A stretch of 64,000 bases of DNA from Salpingoeca rosetta (Eukaryota > Protista > Choanoflagellata): NCBI GenBank assembly GCA_033442325.1, contig JAWQFM010000007.1, forward strand, positions 578,948 to 642,947. Direction: 5' to 3'. The notes beneath the pieces were generated by a model. That model saw only the letters and a program-made list of their open reading frames with translations. It searched no databases and was not told the DNA's origin. Both the position numbers and the translations under genes were made by a program. Shown here in pieces: positions 4,406 to 52,541 of the stretch; within the stretch, counting starts at the first letter, position 1, and every line of letters starts with the position of its first letter.

Positions 4406-14650
<10,245 letters not shown>

Positions 14651-14799
14651 GCCGCTTGCTGTCTTGGCTGTTGTGCTCGCTTGCTGTTGCTGGCTGGAGG
14701 GGTGTCCGTTTCTTGTTTTGCTGACTCAGGAACCGATGTGATGACATGAGTCATCAGCAAGAGAACAAGAAGGCGACACCACAAATATTACTTCTTGTG

Positions 14800-15897
14800 G
14801 CGACACGACAGAGGGAGATATGCAGGGAGGACAGCCCAGCGGTGGCAACGGCACACGTTCCTGTGAAACCAGAGTGCACCCACCCACCAAGCAAGCAACC
14901 AAGCAACCAAGCAACCAAGCAACCAACAACCACTCGACTCGACACAGCAGTGTACGTGTGAGTCTACACGCGCGCACACTTGTGGGGGACACATGATGAT
15001 GTGGGCTGTTGCTGTGCAGTGGCCATTGCATGGGTGTTGCTTGCCATGACACCCGCACCACATGCACGGAGACCACGACAACCGTGTGCAAAAGAAAGGA
15101 GGGAAGCAGCAAGTAAGTTCTTCCTTTTGCATCACGTATGTGTCCCACTTCTCTCTCACCACCACACACACACACACGTGCCTGCTTGCGTGCTCGCTTG
15201 CTTGCTTGCTGTGTTGCTGGGTGCACGCACACACACACACACACACACACAGACACGCACGTACACACAACACAGACAGTGTGGCACCAGCACAACAACA
15301 ACGACAACAACGCCACCCACAGTGACCACCTCACCAACGTCGCACTGCCGTTTCCAGACAACAGGCCCCGCATGACCTTGCCACTTGCAACGGCGTTGTT
15401 GCGCAGCGGGCGGGGATGCATGGTGATGAGCCACCTTCCCTCCTCAAGCAAGGCAACAATGCCATTCCCTGGCACTGGGCTCACTGCCAGACAACCAGCA
15501 CCAACTTTTGCCACTGCGTGCGTGCGTGTGATGTGTGATGTGTGATGTGTGTGCGTGTTTGTGGCACACGATGTGCGCACGCGTGCGTTTTTGCATGGAG
15601 TGCATCACTGGCAATGCCCCTGGCTGCTGGGCGCTGTCGCTTGTGCTGGCGGTATTGGTCCTGCTGCTGAAGCAAGGGCACACACACACACGCACATATC
15701 GCCATTCCTCACACACCACACCAACAGCCAACCCGCAACAACAACCATATCAGCAGCAGCAGCAGCAGCAGCACACGAGCAAGAGCTGGAGTGCATGCAC
15801 ACATAACCACAGCCGACCACAGACCACAAACCACAGCCGACCACAGACCACAGCAGCCTCATTTGCGTTCATCCTCATTCAACCTCTCCCACGCAGC
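14800..15897. repeat. Direct repeat copy 1 (~1.1 kb), spanning the intergenic region between the flippase and the Cys-rich secreted gene
   Basis: GCGACACGACAGAGGGAG...CCTCTCCCACGCAGC is near-identical to 20410-21517. Differences are microsatellite lengths and a few substitutions. Confidence 0.95.
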
Positions 15898-15962
15898 TTT
15901 TGACCGCGTTCCTTCTTCTTGTTGGCCTCGATCTACCACTACTTAACACATACACAATCACA

Positions 15963-16918
15963 ATGGCACGCACGGCAATCTTCCTCACCTTCGCAGCAGC
16001 TATGCTCGCTGGTACGTGTGGCATGCATGTGTGTGTGTGTGTGTGGCATGCGTTCGCCCATGAGAACATGTTTTTCGTGATGTTTGTGGGCACATGTCGT
16101 TGTGCTGGTTCTCGGTCGACTGGACGCCTTTTCTGTGTGTTGTGCATCGTGTCACCCTGCATTCAACTCAACTTAACTGTGCCTGCTCACCCACGTGCAC
16201 ACCCATACACGCACGTCTCACCTTCGATTGGTCTCACCATCTTGTAATGCGCTTCCCTCTCGCGCGTCGCCCCCCCCCCCCCTTTTCGACTACACAAACA
16301 ACAACAACAACACAGCCGCCGCTGCCACTGAGGTTCGGCTGACCCAGATTTCGTCGTTTGACCGCTTTGCCGGCGATGTCGAGGATGCGACCACCACCAG
16401 CACAGGCTGCGTCTCGCTCGGCGTGTCCAACTCCGGTTACCAGTTCACCCCCGCCGATGCCAACACCGTCACCCCTGTCTGCATCGACTCGTGCAACGAG
16501 AACGGCTGCTACACATTCTCCGAGGGCTGCGGGGCTGGCTGCGACTTCTGCGCGGAGGTTTCCGAGTGCACGGACAGGGACGGCTTCAAGCGCTGCACAG
16601 AGCTCCTCAGCTGCCCATGCGTTGTTGGCGCGTACACGTGCGAGCCCGCAAACGTCGGCGTCTCCATCGAGTCTGTGGTGCGTACCAATTTGGTTGTGTC
16701 TGTTTGTGTCTGTGTGAGTTACGTGTGTGTTTGTGGGCGTAGGAATTTGTTTGTGTGTGATTGTGTGTGTGATTGCGTAGCAGAGTGTGCAAGATTGCTC
16801 AGTTGTGGTTCTGTGTGTGCCAGTGGTTGCACATCGTGTGCCAGCGGTCAGTGTTGACTCATGCGTAACCAACACAGCTCACTCTTATGCACTTCACCCA
16901 CCACCACGCTGCTGCTGC

Positions 16919-16952
<34 letters not shown>

Positions 16953-16954
16953 GG

Positions 16955-17021
<67 letters not shown>

Positions 17022-17500
17022 CAGCCCGAGGACAGCGACGCGCGCCGCCTTGACCTGCTCACCACGGGCGGATACTTTGCGTACTTTGCGCAGGAGGACT
17101 GCACCGGCACGGGCTTCAACATGCTTGCATGCAGCGCAAAGGACGGAGACTGCAAGGTGCAGTGTGCATGTGCATTGTGCAAGATTTGTGTGCTTGTGGT
17201 GGGGTTGTGGTATGCTTGGCGTTGGTTTGCTGCAGCCTTCGCTGCTGCGCTTGCGCTTTCGGTTGCCATCTTTCCCCTTCCCAATTGTTTTTGTGCCAAG
17301 GGGCTTTGCTCCCACCCTTTCCCTTCTGCTGTTACCGCGACATGATTCGTCTTCTCGTCTCGTCACACCCACATCTCACCCACCTTTTCTCATCCCATGC
17401 ACTCACACATTTGCTGTATCACCACGCAAACGCACCACAGGGCCTTGCACCGTGCACCTCGTCTGACGGCAGCTGCTGCAAGCTTGTCCCCACGGCCTAG
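15963..17500 (+). CDS. Secreted cysteine-rich protein (~200 aa, 4 exons), unknown function
   Basis: Signal peptide MARTAIFLTFAAAMLA-AAAA. Exons 15963-16011, 16316-16677, 17025-17156 and 17441-17500 splice in frame with GT..AG; many Cys; ends CCKLVPTA*. Confidence 0.8.
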
Positions 17501-18778
17501 ATCCTGCACCCCACCTCTCCTATCCATTCATTCAACTTCCACACATACCTATCCTTCCTATCCGTCCGTCCACCCATCCATCCATTCTCCTTCCCGCCCT
17601 TTTTTTCCCCTGAATAAGTGTCGTCCTCGTCTCGTCGTCTGCGATGTTTCGTGGCAACCTGCAACAGAATCATGCCTACATGTCTACATGCCAACCTTCC
17701 CCCTCCTCCCAACTGAAACGTTTGTTGAACTACCTTGACCACCAATGTATGGCGTGCTGTTGCTGTCCTGTCCCTTGCCACGCCCTGTATGACTGTGTCT
17801 TTGCGTCATGCGGTGGGTGACGATATGTGCCCACCTGGGCGGTTTGCCCGTTGCTGTCGTCAGCGTGAGCTACACGCTGGCTGGGCACCGTTCGTGGCAG
17901 TTGTGTTGTCGCGTTGATGGCGTGGTTTGTTGTTTGTTGTTGTCTGGCTTGTCTGGCTTGTTGTGAGTCTGCTGTCGTAGTCGTTGGTGTTGGTGCTGTT
18001 TGCTTTTATTACTTGTACCGTGCGTGTGTGCTTCTACCATGCATCGCACACGCACGCGAACGTGTGTGAGGGGTGTAAATCACTTTTGTGATTCGTCTAC
18101 TACAGCATCCACTTTCTCTCTATCGCGCGCACGTTCGAGGAGGATTTGAGCAGGCCCTGCACACACAACAGAGTGCACAACACACACACACACACACCAC
18201 ACACACACACACAGCGTGCACACGCACAGTGCACGCGCACACACACACGCACGCACAGTGCACGCGCACACACGCACACACGCACACAGTGCACACACAA
18301 CGCATCAGCCAGCTGAACGTGTGTATTGTTATGTGATCAGGTACCCTTGTGGCCATGATCACTGCCATCTGGGCAGCACAACGGGAAGACACAATGCCGT
18401 GGACATGAAAGCATTGGAATTGACAAGGAAATGCACAACACATACACCGAGAAGGAAAGCGAGCCTGTGAACATTGGAGCCAGCCAACGAAACGAAGCGA
18501 CAACCCGAAAAGGCAAAACGAAGCCGAGGAAAGGAGATCACGCAAAGGACGGCACTTGCACAAGCGAACCGTCACGGTCAACACAGATAAGCAACGGCAA
18601 ACGTAGCACACACTCATTGATGCGTTCTTACATACATCGCGCAACCACACAAACACACAGATACACACAGACACACAGACACACGCACACACACACACAG
18701 ACACACACGCACACACACACATACACACACACAATGGTGCATACACACGTCACGCAACCACACGCCCCGTCAACTCGC

Positions 18779-20218
18779 TCAGTTTGTGTGGTGGTCAAAG
18801 CACGGGGGAATTGGGTTGGTGCCGTGCGTGGCAGTGGAGTTGGCGACGCCTTTGCACTTGTAGTACTTGTCGCCCCACGGGTACACGCCAGGGTTGACCA
18901 CCTTGACGTTGTCAAACGCAATCGCCTCCATGGGTTTGGTGCTGTTGCCCAGGATCACGCCAGGGCTCCACAGTGGGTCATACACAACAATGTCGCGCAG
19001 CACAATGTTGTGCCAGTGCATGTTGCTCGGCACAGGGCACTTGGCAATGGGGTCCTCCGGCCACAGCAACGAGCACGCGTGCTTGTAGCCGGCCTGCTGC
19101 GGGCCAATCCAGATGGCCCATTGGGTCGGGTTGTAGATGGTGATGTTCTCGTACAGGACATCGGAGATGGAGCCAGTTGCCGGGTCATCCTCCGGCCGCG
19201 ACTTCATATAGATGCCCTTGAACGTGTTGTGCATCACGCTGTCACGGAAGGTGATGTTGCGCACGCACGTGTGCGCGAGGGAGGCGCCGATGGACCCGAT
19301 GGTGAGGCCGACACCGCTGGCGTTGATGCGCTCAAAGAGCATGTTCTCGCTGCACGGGGAGCGGATGCTGTCCCCCGTCTGCTGCTTCACGGCAATGCAG
19401 TCGTCGTCGTTCCAGATGTTGCAGTCGTGGATGTGCACGTTCTTGCCCGCCACGTCAAACCCGTCTGTGTTGAAGGCGGTGAGGTCGAAGAGATCGTGGT
19501 AGGGGCGGTCCGTGCGCCGCGCATCCACGTCGCAGTAGCGGATCACAACGTCCTCCACGTCCTCTGCCATCACGTGGTAGTAGGGTGAGTTCTTGAACAG
19601 GATGTGCTCAAACAGCAGCTGCGACGCGTTGTGGATGTACAGCATCTTGGGCCTGTTCTCGCCAATGAGCAGGTACTCCACCGCGCCCCACCACGCGCTG
19701 CCGTGGCCGTCGATGGTGCCCATGCCGGAGCTGGTGATGGTGATGTTGTCGACGTTCTCCAGGTGCATGCACTCAAACACGCGCCCATCGGGGTGGCGCG
19801 GCCACGCCTTCATGTCGTCCAGGTACGCCAGCGTGCCGTCAATCTGGATCACCACGTCCCGAATGCCCGTGGCGTAGATGCCGCCCATGAGCCAGAAGGT
19901 CGTGTTTGGAATGAGCAGCGTGTCCCCGGGCGCCAGGCTGGCCAGCGTCGTGTTCATTAGCTTGCTGTTTGCCTGCGCGACAGAGAGGGACTTGTCGTTG
20001 GCCACGCCACCAACCTTGGCAAAGTCCACCACGTGCGCAGCCGCCTCGATGCTGTGGTGCATGTGCATCACGGTTGCTCCAGCGTGCTTGCCGTTCACAG
20101 GCACGGCAGCAGCGGTGACGCTGCCCGCAATAACAGCGACAGCCACCAAACTCACCACCGCGGTCACCATCGCCATCCCTCGTGACGTGATCGGCGTCAT
20201 CGGTGCGCTCCTCTTCAT
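18779..20218 (-). CDS. Glycoside hydrolase family 28 (polygalacturonase-like beta-helix), secreted, intronless CDS
   Basis: Hydrophobic N-terminus, DFAKVGG, TLLIP, GTIDGHGSAWW, RP, KNSPYYH, FNTDGFD, NDDDCIAVK, GLTIGSIG, GIYMKS, DVLYENIT. Confidence 0.9.
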   Translation of the reverse strand: MKRSAPMTPITSRGMAMVTAVVSLVAVAVIAGSVTAAAVPVNGKHAGATVMHMHHSIEAAAHVVDFAKVGGVANDKSLSVAQANSKLMNTTLASLAPGDTLLIPNTTFWLMGGIYATGIRDVVIQIDGTLAYLDDMKAWPRHPDGRVFECMHLENVDNITITSSGMGTIDGHGSAWWGAVEYLLIGENRPKMLYIHNASQLLFEHILFKNSPYYHVMAEDVEDVVIRYCDVDARRTDRPYHDLFDLTAFNTDGFDVAGKNVHIHDCNIWNDDDCIAVKQQTGDSIRSPCSENMLFERINASGVGLTIGSIGASLAHTCVRNITFRDSVMHNTFKGIYMKSRPEDDPATGSISDVLYENITIYNPTQWAIWIGPQQAGYKHACSLLWPEDPIAKCPVPSNMHWHNIVLRDIVVYDPLWSPGVILGNSTKPMEAIAFDNVKVVNPGVYPWGDKYYKCKGVANSTATHGTNPIPPCFDHHTN

Positions 20219-20409
20219 CCTCCCTGTCACAAACACACACTCGCACAGGGGCGCTGATGGCTCAACTTTTGCTCTGCGTTGCTTTGGTTGAGCTTGTTGT
20301 TGTGGGTTGTCTTCTTGGTTTGTTTGGAGACGTTGATTGCTGAAATTTGATTGAAAATGTACATAAAAGACGCCCCTCCAAACAATTTGTGCTGTTGTGT
20401 TCGTAAGTC

Positions 20410-21361
20410 GCGACACGACAGAGGGAGATATGCAGGGAGGACAGCCCAGCGGTGGCAACGGCACACGTTCCTGTGAAACCAGAGTGCACCCACCCACCAA
20501 GCAAGCAACCAAGCAACCAAGCAACCAAGCAACCAACAACCACTCGACTCGACACAGCAGTGTACGTGTGAGTCTACACGCGCGCACACTTGTGGGGGGA
20601 CACATGATGATGTGGGCTGTTGCTGTGCAGTGGCCATTGCATGGGTGTTGCTTGCCATGACACCCGCACCACATGCACGGAGACCACGACAACCGTGTGC
20701 AAAAGAAAGGAGGGAAGCAGCAAGTAAGTTCTTCCTTTTGCATCACGTATGTGTCCCACTTCTCTCTCACCACCACACACACACGTGCCTGCTTGCGTGC
20801 TCGCTTGCTTGCTTGCTGTGTTGCTGGGTGCACGCACTCACACTCACACACACACACACAGACACGCACGTACACACAACACAGACAGTGTGGCACCAGC
20901 ACAACAACAACGACAACAACGCCACCCACAGTGACCACCTCACCAACGTCGCACTGCCGTTTCCAGACAACAGGCCCCGCATGACCTTGCCACTTGCAAC
21001 GGCGTTGTTGCGCAGCGGGCGGGGATGCATGGTGATGAGCCACCTTCCCTCCTCAAGCAAGGCAACAATGCCATTCCCTGGCACTGGGCTCACTGCCAGA
21101 CAACCAGCACCAACTTTTGCCACTGCGTGCGTGCGTGCGTGTGCGTGATGTGTGATGTGTGTGCGTGTTTGTGGCACACGATGTGCGCACGCGTGCGTTT
21201 TTGCATGGAGTGCATCACTGGCAATGCCCCTGGCTGCTGGGCGCTGTCGCTTTGTGCTGGCGGTATTGGTCCTGCTGCTGAAGCAAGGGCACACACACAC
21301 ACGCACATATCGCCATTCCTCACACACCACACCAACAGCCAACCCGCAACAACAACCATAT

Positions 21362-21393
<32 letters not shown>

Positions 21394-21517
21394 CACGAGC
21401 AAGAGCTGGAGTGCATGCACACATAACCACAGACGACCACAGACCACAAACCACAGACGACCACAGACCACAGCAGCCTCATTTGCGTTCATCCTCATTC
21501 AACCTCTCCCACGCAGC
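20410..21517. repeat. Direct repeat copy 2 (~1.1 kb), spanning the intergenic region between GH28 and the mucin gene
   Basis: Near-identical to 14800-15897 in the same orientation; no TSD or TIR is visible. Confidence 0.95.
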
Positions 21518-21590
21518 ATCTTTCTTTGACAAACGCAAGAGTTGAATCGCTTGCGCTCTATTCATATCATCACACACATTGACCACCAAG

Positions 21591-43142: not shown

Positions 43143-44162
43143 ATGCCCATCGCCGCGACCAAGCTCGACATCTCCAGGGAGCAGCACACCGAGGAGATCC
43201 CCGCGTCATGCTACTTCACCCCTCGCACCGTCAGGGTATGTTTTGTGCGCTTTTGCTTGCTTGTCATCTTCATGATGATGATGGTGGTGATGGGTGGTTG
43301 CGGCCTGCAAGAGTTGCGAGCTTTGTTGTTGTGGTGGTGGCAGCGATGGATGGGGCATGCTGTTAGAGTGTGTTGAGGGTGGTCAGCTACATGAAAGAGA
43401 GAAAAACATGATGACACTGTGACATGATACCCTTACCCTCTTACCAACAACAACAAGGACAACAACAACAAGAAGTACAACAACAAACAATAACAACACG
43501 ATGTGTCTTGAACACCCATCACAAGCAACCCAGCCATACACATAGTCATCACACCTAGCATGTGACCCACTAACCCCACCCCTCCCCTTTTGGTTCTCCA
43601 CACGTACGCTTTCATTTGCCCGCTTGCAGGATCTCCTGTGCTACTATGCGTTTATCCTGTTTGTCACGAGCTTCCTGTGGTTTGCCGGCCTGTACCTTTG
43701 GGCCATTCACGACAACAAGGATGAGGAGCGCGTCGGCATGGGCCTCACCATTGCAGGTGTGTATGACGCGCTGTGTATGTGTCTGTGTGTGCATGTGCAT
43801 GTGCATGTGCATGTATGTNNNNNNNNNNNNNNNNNNNNNNNNNNNNNNNNNNNNNNNNNNNNNNNNNNNNNNNNNNNNNNNNNNNNNNNNNNNNNNNNNN
43901 NNNNNNNNNNNNNNNNNNATCCCCCCCCCTTTCTTTCTTTTTTTCCTTCCTTCCCTTTCTCTTGCTTCCCCCCCCTGCCCATCATGTACTCACTAGCTCA
44001 CTTGCACGATATGCCTGGCCCGTGCCCCTATTTCCACGTGCAGGCATTGTTGTTGGTGGTGGTGCCATCTTGGTGATCACAAGCATCTGCCTGTGTAACT
44101 GCAACAAGCCGCTGCCGGAAACAGAGGACAAGGACGACGATATTGAGATGCAAGAGAAGTGA
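43143..44162 (+). CDS. Small two-transmembrane protein (~112 aa), unknown function
   Basis: Exons 43143-43235, 43630-43756 and 44044-44162 splice in frame; two hydrophobic helices, then CLCNC and an acidic tail. The second intron contains a gap. Confidence 0.65.
43819..43918. other. Assembly gap (100 N)
   Basis: N run. Confidence 1.
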
Positions 44163-50127: not shown

Positions 50128-50326
50128 TTACACGCCATATCCGAGCACAGCACCCTGCACGGGGCGCAACACAGCATCAGCAGAAGACACGTGCGCAAGA
50201 AAGGCAGACGGTGTGAGCTGATGCAATGATTCAGGCACAACAGGCACGCCCCGGCCCGCACACATCGCGTCATTGTCACACACTTGTACATGTACGCACG
50301 CACGCGCGCACACACAGAGAGACAGA

Positions 50327-50371
<45 letters not shown>

Positions 50372-50610
50372 CCTTTGAACATGAGCTTCATCTGTGCAAC
50401 AGGGCACCCAGTCTCCTTCGCAATGAGCTCCTTCAAGTCCTTCACTGTCTGGTCGCTGGACACCGTGACCCTCTTCGTCTCCTTTGCGTACACCACCCGC
50501 AGCGTCATAGATGCGGCTGTCTCATCCTTGGCTTCGCTCATCGTTGTTGTTGTTGTTGTTGTTGTCAGCGTTTGTGTGGGGATTTGTGGACAGTTGCAAC
50601 TTTTTTTTTT

Positions 50611-50652
<42 letters not shown>

Positions 50653-51375
50653 GTTCAAGTAATGCCGTACACTTGGTGGCTTATTGACAAGTAACGGCAC
50701 TCATACCTCTTGGGATGTGTTTGGATAGTGGATGATGAGCTTGTTGTTTGCCGTCTTGATGTGCAGGCGGGCCTGAGACACGAAGCAAAGCACATCGACA
50801 CAAGGGGGGGGGGGAAACATGAGTGTGAACGGAGTGACGGACACATGTGCATGTCTGTGTGTGTGTGTGTGTATGCATGTGAGTGCGTACACGTGCGCGT
50901 GTGTGCGTCAGCACTTGTGCACCACATGCATGTCCACGGCACCTTCTTGCCGCCATCGCCGATGAGGCCGGCAAGCGGACCGTCGGGCAGCGGATCCTGA
51001 CCAGGGCGGTACGCTGTTCACCATCATCACCACCACCACCACCATCATCATCATCAGAAGCAGCAGCAGCAGTAGTAGTAGTAGTAGTAGTTGTCGTAGT
51101 AGTAGTAGTAGTAGCAGCAGCAGCAGCAGCAGCAGCAGTGGGGAAGTGGAAGCATGCACATCAAGCAACCGCAAGGGGTACGGTGTGGGTAAGTGTGGGG
51201 ACACGTTGAAGGGTGAGCACGTTTGCAAAGGGTTGTCGACACCGAATATCAACGCACCAAAAGGGGCGTCCGCCGGAGGGCCCTTCTGGATGATTTCACG
51301 ATGCACCTGCAAAGAACGAAGCAGCACGCAAACGTGAGGGACAATGGCAAGCGCAGATGTGGATCTGATTCACCA

Positions 51376-51895: not shown

Positions 51896-52110
51896 TCGCT
51901 GTGGAGTTGTCATGTGAACACTGCGGTGCTGTGTGGCTCGACAATGCATATGGAGGAACTGTTTTCACACGCAACGGCTGACCTCTTTCAATCCGGTCTC
52001 CGAGATCTTCTTTGCGTCCAGCTCGGGTTTGCCAGGTGCCGCCAGCAACCCTGCGCAAACGCGTGAGACCGTGAGATGTGTACAAAGAAAGCACATGAGC
52101 CCTTGACATG

Positions 52111-52189
<79 letters not shown>

Positions 52190-52359
52190 CCTTTGAACAT
52201 GAGCTTCATCTGTGCAACAGGGCACCCAGTCTCCTTCGCAATGAGCTCCTTCAAGTCCTTCACTGTCTGGTCGCTGGACACCGTGACCCTCTTCGTCTCC
52301 TTTGCGTACACCACCCGCAGCGTCATAGATGCGGCTGTCTCATCCTTGGCTTCGCTCAT
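50128..52359 (-). CDS. UBFD1-like protein (N-terminal ubiquitin-like domain plus C-terminal PH-like domain); model disrupted
   Basis: UBL exon TVKDLKELIAKETGCPVAQMKLMFKG-LL, then VLVVGAT, KKKWSEE.HREIIQKGPP, DPLPDGPLAGLIGDGGKK-ARLHIK and a last exon GAVLGYGV*. Penultimate exon(s) appear replaced by a copy of exon 1. Confidence 0.7.
50369..50655. repeat. Exact duplicate of 52187-52474 (UBL exon 1 plus 5' flank)
   Basis: Identical apart from homopolymer/microsatellite length, bounded by (CA)n and (GT)n. Confidence 0.92.
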
Positions 52360-52428
52360 CGTTGTTGTTGTTGTTGTTGTTGTCAGCGTTTGTGTGGGGA
52401 TTTGTGGACAGTTGCAACTTTTTTTTTT

Positions 52429-52470
<42 letters not shown>

Positions 52471-52541
52471 GTTCACTCTTTCAACACCTTTGTTCCAACG
52501 CCAGTCTGTACTTGTTGGCATGTATTCGCTTTCATTGGTGC

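Follow-up and report, generated by a model that had tools for sequence, protein, structure and literature searches.

A non-coding 1.1-kb block present twice upstream of unrelated thecate-upregulated genes in Salpingoeca rosetta

No living group is more closely related to animals than the choanoflagellates, and to our knowledge little is understood of how these encode cell-type-specific expression. A 64-kb window (the whole stretch of DNA analysed), corresponding to S. rosetta scaffold GL832962.1, raises this question in a compact form: it contains a 1.1-kb direct repeat, here called R, one copy of which (R1, 14797-15897) lies 5' of a gene for a Cys-rich secreted protein and the other (R2, 20407-21517) 5' of a gene for a mucin-like protein. 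The two copies are spaced 5.6 kb apart in direct orientation and enclose an interior of 4.5 kb. What is this block, how did it come to be present twice, and does it confer the same regulation on both genes? The locus amounts to a natural experiment, in which one block occurs twice beside two unrelated thecate genes and the intervening gene on the opposite strand differs.

Copies of R in the assembly and in independent sequencing

Exactly two copies of R were found in the window by repeat search, by MAFFT alignment and by a blastn search of the window with R1, the remaining blastn matches being CA-microsatellite only. R1 and R2 are 97.8% identical with gaps included (MAFFT), and differ by seven substitutions and seven small indel events over their whole length; the substitution divergence is 0.6%. 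The indels chiefly concern microsatellite length, (CAG)7 versus (CAG)10 and CACA among them, besides a single G and a single T. The slight differences that the original prediction had noted, in repeat lengths and between AGCCGACC and AGACGACC, recur in the alignment, where the latter is present twice, with C at 15813 and 15837 in R1 and A at 21433 and 21457 in R2. The boundaries of R are sharp: the 300 bp on each side show no decayed homology, and alignments of the flanks are no better than those of shuffled sequences, microsatellite aside.

Such similarity might also be that of an old duplication, held at 99% identity by ongoing gene conversion between R1 and R2. At 5.6 kb from each other in direct orientation, the two copies are well placed for conversion, and the C/A differences fall at the same position of both units of a 24-bp tandem repeat; because the two units match within each copy of R (both C in R1, both A in R2), local homogenisation does occur. 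However, the boundaries are sharp, and R1 and R2 still differ by seven scattered substitutions and seven indels over their full length, which makes maintenance by conversion quite unlikely.

Contigs of R have a k-mer depth of 137-171 against 74-91 for the adjoining unique contigs in run X1 (about 1.6-2.0x), and of 29 against 8-12 in run X4 (about 3x). In these two independent DNA studies, contigs at 18738/19558-20439 bear the R2-specific C at 20409, and contigs starting at 15868 and 21488 are two branches leaving the common right end of R; contigs 18738-20439 and 21488-21600+ thus enter and leave R2. The junctions seen in independent contigs are the left end of R2 and both right exits, the left junction of R1, on the flippase side, not being among them. 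In 2026 raw RNA reads, those mapped on R2 carried R1 alleles in 16 of 32 cases at 20594 (deletion), in 8 of 16 at 21251 (deletion) and in 48 of 109 at 21144 (C>T), or 44-50%. As the variants among these reads are exactly R1 alleles, at near 50%, both copies are transcribed, and about equally. Odd joints and loose ends at 15678, 21124-21147, 16312 and 20525-20536 all sit on microsatellites; we read them as cross-mapping and rejected rearrangement on that ground.

The about twofold depth and the separate contigs leading into different flanks exclude both a misassembly and a high-copy transposon. The scaffold is a draft, with N gaps nearby (24364-24463 and 25745-26723), and a single R in the genome could have been duplicated by the assembly; this is contradicted by the depth, by the two ways in which contigs continue to the right, by the left junction specific to R2 and by the presence of both allele sets at about 50%, and an artefact is therefore extremely improbable. 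The original prediction had named a high-copy non-autonomous element as a further danger to its own reading, and here too the depth indicates about two copies, with no third in the window.

In outline the locus resembles an LTR retrotransposon or solo LTRs, with some 4.5 kb enclosed by direct repeats of about 1 kb, each with a promoter and transcribed sequence, between which recombination would delete the interior. Unlike such an element, it has no gag or pol, its interior is limited to a GH28 gene and one host gene with introns, and its copy number is two, none lying elsewhere in the 64 kb. The termini of R read GTGGCG...CGCAGC. No target-site duplication (TSD) was found around either copy of R or around the unit as a whole, TG..CA ends are absent, and terminal inverted repeats (TIRs) are lacking, only 7 of 30 terminal positions matching, as had been claimed from the start; neither a PBS after nor a PPT before the repeat copies is present in the flanks. 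With no TSD, no TIR and about two copies, R does not qualify as a TIR transposon or MITE either, and megablast of R against a phage collection gave no match. That R is an LTR pair or a pair of non-autonomous transposon copies can hardly be entertained.

A transcribed, intron-containing leader between unrelated genes

R fills most of the spacer in two divergent gene pairs. Between the flippase ATG (14650) and R1 there are 146 nt, and between R1 and the ATG of the Cys-rich gene (15963) 65 nt; the corresponding distances for R2 are 188 nt to the GH28 ATG (20218) and 73 nt to the ATG of the mucin-like gene (21591). These values are close to the 150, 66, 190 and 74 bp first estimated. The flippase gene (minus strand, 8779-14650) is the 5' part of a P4-ATPase gene that extends below 8779, and its 1407 aa include PhoLip_ATPase_N, Cation_ATPase and PhoLip_ATPase_C. 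The Cys-rich secreted protein PTSG_03516 (plus strand, 15963-17500; 200 aa) is encoded by exons 15963-16011, 16316-16677, 17025-17156 and 17441-17500, with 21 reads across the splice 17154>17439; its introns are microsatellite-filled, as is typical for the S. rosetta genome. Homology searches with these exons returned only PTSG_03516 itself, an orphan at the search sensitivity used.

The interior also holds PTSG_03517 (minus strand, 18779-20218), a single-exon GH28 glycoside hydrolase gene of 479 aa covered by an RNA contig (18738-20338). Relatives 64-81% identical to it occur in other eukaryote transcriptomes; a homologue on a 153-kb metagenome contig adjoins another GH28 gene and unrelated genes, and is uninformative on the ancestral state. 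Both the GH28 and the Cys-rich gene are single-copy by depth. Beyond R2 follows PTSG_03518 (plus strand, 21591-25078), which encodes a Thr-rich mucin-like secreted protein of 545 aa by a model that spans a 100-N assembly gap, and whose identity follows from the ratio of count/FPKM lengths (2.7164 = 1638/603). The Cys-rich and mucin-like proteins are unrelated in comparison. A homologue search with a fragment of the mucin was swamped by Thr-rich low-complexity matches, and the S. rosetta protein was not returned. In the literature we found nothing specific to S. rosetta on polygalacturonase or on a bidirectional promoter, and the PTSG gene ids occur neither in main texts nor in the supplements of a 2025 iron-assimilation paper.

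Strand-specific RNA depth places the plus-strand start inside R, where the original prediction needed it to be. Plus-strand RNA begins at about 20400-20507, within some 110 bp of the left end of R, and crosses R into the downstream gene, the depth to the left of R2 being 0.12 (20201-20400). The exact start is masked by a (CAAGCAAC)n microsatellite which draws reads from another locus. Leader exon 1 (20507-20723, plus strand, in RNA contig X17; equivalent to about 14897-15112 in R1) has its true 5' end further left, at about 20407-20507, hidden by the same microsatellite. It is followed in R2 by an intron (20724-20966, plus strand, GTAAGT...TTTCCAG), and the GT..AG joint 20723>20967 is present in the X17 contig and in three raw reads of run X24, a number that leaves the spliced fraction uncertain. 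The same intron, with identical splice sites, lies at 15113-15357 (plus strand) in R1; it is 243-245 nt long, and in either copy the splice sites are canonical. A snoRNA hosted by the intron was considered and rejected for want of Rfam support, R having no match to an Rfam family at E <= 1.

Leader exon 2 of the Cys-rich mRNA (15358-15962, plus strand) consists of R1 sequence to 15897 and then of 65 unique nt; an RNA contig is unbroken over 15868-16010 and then spliced to 16315-16677, with a plus-strand depth of 28-49. Its counterpart upstream of the mucin-like gene (20967-21590, plus strand) comprises R2 sequence to 21517 and 73 unique nt, and is covered by an X17 contig at 20967-21346 and by a plus-strand depth of 10-35 up to 21600. 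A pyrimidine tract plus CAG at the right end of R (15896/21516) was rejected as an exon boundary, as the RNA contig passes straight through it.

Thus about 90% of R is a transcribed plus-strand 5' leader with an intron, and the description of R as in the main a bidirectional intergenic spacer does not hold. The leader carries 19-20 upstream ATGs, and it is non-coding, because the upstream ORFs are frameshifted between R1 and R2; the claim that only non-coding DNA was duplicated is borne out. For genes of secreted proteins as well expressed as these two, a 5' UTR with some 20 upstream ATGs is unusual. Additional start sites may lie closer to the ATGs of the Cys-rich and mucin-like genes.

Expression of the genes around R

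PTSG_03516 and PTSG_03518 both belong to the 783-gene 'Attach' (thecate-upregulated) cluster of Fairclough 2013 (PMC4054682, supplements), with log2FC(Attach/Colony) of 4.30 and 4.18, each about 18-fold. Their log-FPKM values correlate at r = 0.98, and their ratio is stable, the SD being 0.44 log2 where three other thecate genes give 1.6-2.0. The common leader cannot be the source of this correlation, since FPKM was computed on CDS lengths only, as the length ratio given above shows. The GH28 gene PTSG_03517 is colony-upregulated (log2FC 1.46; PMC4054682) and anti-correlated with both plus-strand genes (r = -0.75 with the Cys-rich gene and -0.79 with the mucin-like gene); because it lies between the two, a simple shared-domain effect is argued against. 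The comparison covers these three genes, the flippase gene not figuring in the expression tables used. These values need to be interpreted cautiously: any two genes of the thecate cluster correlate at r = 0.86-0.99, and the nearby PTSG_03506, 03523 and 03524 are likewise 'Attach' genes (PMC4054682), so that the co-expression is supportive, not decisive.

A bidirectional promoter of a head-to-head pair would be expected to co-regulate its two genes; the GH28 and mucin-like genes are of opposite classes, and only the plus-strand output of R is demonstrably shared. The GH28 gene probably starts from a site of its own within the unique 188-bp segment between its ATG and R2 (20219-20406, minus strand), as hinted by its RNA contig (X17), which ends at 20338 while DNA contigs continue through; a contig end is no proof of an RNA end. 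Microsatellite reads cross-map at 20401-20600 and confound the minus-strand signal there. Regulation is therefore common to one side only. Of the earlier proposal that R gave both genes their regulation at once, the part which stands is the shared thecate class of the Cys-rich and mucin-like genes, and the part which falls is the co-regulation of the GH28 gene.

We consider it probable that R is a portable promoter-leader module, recently duplicated locally, which places two unrelated genes under the same thecate programme. The core promoter would lie in the first ~100 bp of R and be followed by a non-coding plus-strand 5' leader of about 1 kb, or about 0.85 kb once the intron is removed. A recent local duplication at the DNA level would have produced R1 and R2, which are spaced 5.6 kb apart and now stand 65-73 nt 5' of the start codons of unrelated secreted-protein genes; both fire about equally, PTSG_03516 and PTSG_03518 follow one thecate-cell-specific programme, and the flippase and GH28 genes on the minus strand would merely be adjacent to R. 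The shared expression class suggests that the thecate specificity resides in R. If so, R is a compact candidate thecate-specific promoter-leader, usable in S. rosetta transfection, and the locus a concrete example of a gene joining a cell-type programme via duplication of regulatory DNA.

Origin of the duplication

As a structural event, the locus is an ordinary small local segmental duplication, with near-identical copies, sharp ends, unrelated flanks and about twofold depth. It is like promoter or 5'-exon capture in that a non-coding promoter-leader was copied in direct orientation, a few kilobases off, ahead of an unrelated gene, and in that the gene downstream of the copied block shows the same expression class. 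It differs in that R includes a whole 1-kb intron-containing leader and that the copies are still about 99% identical.

The original prediction had instead started from an ancestral flippase-R-mucin arrangement, into which a cassette of the Cys-rich and GH28 genes integrated, whether through staggered breaks whose fill-in duplicated 1.1 kb of target or through a Campbell-type single crossover with an R-bearing circle, and from which it could be excised. The observed structure is formally what either mechanism yields, and it would look alike after a local copy of R; the data favour insertion no more than they favour a 1.1-kb copy. Insertion, however, needs a 4.5-kb cut-and-paste and an unusual kilobase-scale target duplication where one 1.1-kb local copy suffices. 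The interior also looks native, given the microsatellite-filled introns of the Cys-rich gene, the eukaryote relatives of GH28 and the single-copy depth of both, and the GH28 gene does not use the regulation of R. Furthermore, all 20 locus-bearing runs, from seven studies, contain the cassette, although all carry one species label and cultures of S. rosetta go back to a single isolate. We thus regard insertion as rather unlikely, and a simple local copy of R as the more economical account of its origin.

Direct repeats are a substrate for circles and copy-number change, as in repeat-flanked amplicons and eccDNA (circular amplification in Leishmania, CUP1-type circles in yeast). Excision or switching by recombination between R1 and R2 is a formal possibility only: no circle, empty site, deletion or amplification came to light, and short reads and their contigs cannot tell circle, empty-site or amplification products apart across an identical 1.1-kb repeat.

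The window contains a second short direct duplication, which covers the 5' end of a gene and counts in favour of insertion. It also fits, loosely, a recurrent process in S. rosetta by which segments are inserted with hundreds to ~1000 bp of target duplicated on both sides, an idea that we hold to be unlikely; if true, newcomers would gain a host promoter and leader at once, and the repeat-flanked unit could later be lost or amplified.

Two copies of a non-coding block within a five-gene locus

The 1.1-kb block R, a promoter with a long spliced leader, occurs as two direct copies, R1 (14797-15897) and R2 (20407-21517), the product of a small and recent segmental duplication that places two unrelated secreted-protein genes, both thecate-specific in behaviour, behind near-identical upstream modules. 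Among public contigs, the GH28 protein of the window is found on one, GL832962.1 (1.95 Mb) of the Salpingoeca rosetta assembly GCA_000188695.1, from which gene calls were taken (window = 30219 - locus coordinate). The five genes called are a P4-ATPase (flippase; ATG 14650, minus strand), the Cys-rich gene PTSG_03516 (15963-17500, plus, 200 aa, four exons), the GH28 gene PTSG_03517 (18779-20218, minus, 479 aa, a single exon among intron-rich neighbours; annotated in the Fairclough 2013 supplements), the Thr-rich mucin-like PTSG_03518 (21591-25078, plus, 545 aa) and, past it, a fifth gene on the minus strand. The exons of PTSG_03516 were found by demanding a 603-nt open frame, and RNA contigs agree with them. 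We equate the 545-aa Thr-rich protein with PTSG_03518 because dividing counts by FPKM gives values for PTSG_03518 and PTSG_03516 whose quotient is exactly 2.7164 = 1638/603 in eight of eight samples. Its product is probably incomplete, since one of the N runs in the window (24364-24463, 100 bases; the others are 25745-26723, 979 bases, and 43819-43918, 100 bases) falls inside the gene model; repeated KPGAVA..GCRTC.CVL modules follow its Thr-rich tracts. The closest relatives of the GH28 protein are eukaryote transcriptome proteins (64-81% identity), followed by bdelloid rotifer GH28s (about 55-61%), and its translation has GVG at the place of the GHG found in many GH28s.

R is the sole long repeat of its sequence within the 64-kb window. 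The copies differ by seven substitutions and seven indel events, the majority being microsatellite length changes, and their borders are abrupt: flanks of 100 and 300 bp are no more similar than shuffled sequence, CA/GT runs excepted. The ends of R lie 146, 65, 188 and 73 nt from the flippase, Cys-rich, GH28 and mucin-like start codons, in agreement with the original prediction (about 150, 66, 190 and 74), which was also right that the ends and flanks of both copies carry no terminal inverted repeats, target-site duplication or TG..CA ends; nothing similar to a primer-binding site or polypurine tract was found at R1 or R2. At matching positions in the two units of a 24-bp tandem repeat, R1 has C and C (15813/15837) and R2 has A and A (21433/21457), so the units have been homogenised locally within each copy. 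The right end of R (15870-15897 / 21490-21517) stops one base past a pyrimidine-rich tract and CAG, resembling a 3' splice site; an exon boundary there was rejected, as an RNA contig crosses it unspliced.

The locus is present in 20 public runs from seven studies. We mapped to 15601-21600 two independent DNA runs (X1 and X4) and one probable RNA run, all as contigs, together with the raw reads of one 2026 stranded RNA run. In X1, contigs of R have a depth of 137-171x versus 74-91x for long unique contigs, and in X4 29x versus 8-12x; thus R exists in about two copies and is not the high-copy non-autonomous element that would have told against the original prediction. In both DNA runs, contigs running from GH28 into R2 stop at 20439, exactly 30 nt beyond the R2-specific base 20409, and contigs start at 15868 and 21488, both 30 nt within the common right end of R, the pattern left where a k=31 assembly branches into two distinct right flanks. 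Differences mapped on R2 are the R1 alleles (1-nt deletions at 20594 and 21251, C>T at both 21138 and 21144, and CACA following 20773); in the raw RNA reads they account for 16/32 at 20594, 8/16 at 21251 and 48/109 at 21144. Given the depth, the junction contigs and R1 alleles in near half of the reads, a one-copy misassembly is excluded within 15601-21600, although no read of these runs proves long-range linkage over the identical 1.1-kb repeat. The allele shares also show that R1 and R2 are transcribed about equally.

A plus-strand start site and a shared leader

First mates of the stranded run are antisense to the transcript: the plus-strand Cys-rich gene has first-mate-minus reads and GH28 first-mate-plus reads. 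Plus-strand depth is 0.12 at 20201-20400, left of R2, 9-35 across R2, and 28-49 from the last part of R1 on into the Cys-rich gene. An RNA contig joins 20507-20723 to 20967-21346 through a GT..AG intron that three raw reads span as well, and GTAAGT and TTTCCAG stand at the splice positions in both copies; another contig runs unbroken from 15868, within R1, to 16010 and is then spliced to 16315-16677. On this evidence the plus-strand start site lies no more than about 110 bp from the left end of R, inside the repeat as the original prediction required, and the rest, about 1 kb, is a 5' leader common to the Cys-rich and mucin-like mRNAs. Extra start sites may lie closer to the two ATGs. A (CAAGCAAC)n microsatellite near the left end (14888-14926 in R1, 20498-20536 in R2) draws more than 1,000 RNA reads with loose ends of the sequence GCCAGAAGCTAAGCAAGCAAGCC...; another highly expressed locus is their source, and they hide the exact point at which plus-strand transcription of R starts.

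The leader (14797-15962 / 20407-21590, plus strand) contains 19-20 upstream ATGs, which is unusual for two well-expressed secreted-protein mRNAs that have to be translated behind it. It is non-coding, since its longest uORFs differ between copies owing to 1-nt indels. With no relationship found between the Cys-rich and mucin-like proteins, the expectation that only non-coding DNA was duplicated holds. An Rfam search of the leader gave no family match.

On the other strand, reads drawn by this microsatellite also confound the signal at 20401-20600. The RNA contig of GH28, which has high coverage, stops at 20338, a point 69 nt outside R2 that DNA contigs pass; this is a hint of a GH28 start site in the unique flank of that gene, although a contig end does not prove an RNA end.

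Expression on the two sides of R

Fairclough et al. 2013 (PMC4054682) give FPKM for, in order, three thecate, one swimmer, three rosette and one chain-colony sample. PTSG_03516 has 220, 386, 251; 8.9; 9.2, 46.7, 12.1; and 5.4, and PTSG_03518 has 119, 199, 153; 10.2; 5.4, 28.8, 8.0; and 1.8. Both belong to the 783-gene cluster upregulated in Attach (thecate cells), with log2 fold changes Attach/Colony of 4.30 and 4.18, and we found their log-FPKM to be correlated at r = 0.98, the ratio between the two staying almost constant. These FPKM are based on CDS length only, and therefore leader reads are not the source of the correlation. GH28, which lies between them, has 9.1, 11.8, 13.0; 15.7; 44.5, 40.9, 35.1; and 36.9; in colonies, both rosettes and chains, it is upregulated (log2FC 1.46), and its correlation with the two genes is negative (r = -0.75 and -0.79). 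The supplement tables examined have no entry for the flippase. Thus any sharing of regulation is on one side only and is not bidirectional: the predicted co-expression of the Cys-rich and mucin-like genes stands, as do the two non-coding copies, while the proposal that both cassette genes gained regulation at once does not. Expression supports regulation of PTSG_03516 and PTSG_03518 through R and is not proof of it, because three unrelated thecate genes correlate with this pair at r = 0.86-0.95 (up to 0.99 among themselves) and a few genes nearby are likewise thecate genes. R is a practical candidate for a thecate-specific promoter-leader. The supplementary files are shifted relative to their captions (one captioned 'upregulated in colonial cells' contains the Attach list), and column headers were used instead.

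Origin of the duplication

We favour, on parsimony, a simple event in which a 1.1-kb copy of R, made from either of the two present sites, would have been placed at a distance of 4.5 kb. The same structure would result if the Cys-rich/GH28 pair had been inserted into an ancestral flippase-R-mucin locus, by kb-scale target duplication or a single crossover of a circle; however, the interior looks native, as the Cys-rich introns are filled with microsatellites in the manner typical of this genome, relatives of GH28 with 64-81% identity occur in the transcriptomes of other eukaryotes, and by depth each of the two genes is single-copy. An older duplication kept similar through gene conversion would also look alike, and parsimony again favours the simple copy. 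Recombination between R1 and R2 would excise 5.6 kb and leave flippase-R-mucin, as for any direct repeat. The cassette is found in every run with the locus (20/20, under one species label), in short reads that are blind to circles and empty sites across R. Cultures of S. rosetta reportedly descend from a single isolate.

A recurrent insertion-with-duplication mechanism in this genome is a minority reading, kept alive by a second 5'-end duplication in the window. The copies of this direct repeat (50283-50657 / 52102-52475; 375 bp, 97%, with an identical core of ~290 bp) lie 1.8 kb from each other, with (CA)n and (GT)n runs at the borders. Both hold, on the minus strand, an ATG and a first coding exon that encodes the start of a ubiquitin-like/UBX-like domain protein and stops at a GT donor. 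What was duplicated here is a promoter-proximal first exon, and the pair may represent alternative first exons or a microsatellite-mediated duplication.
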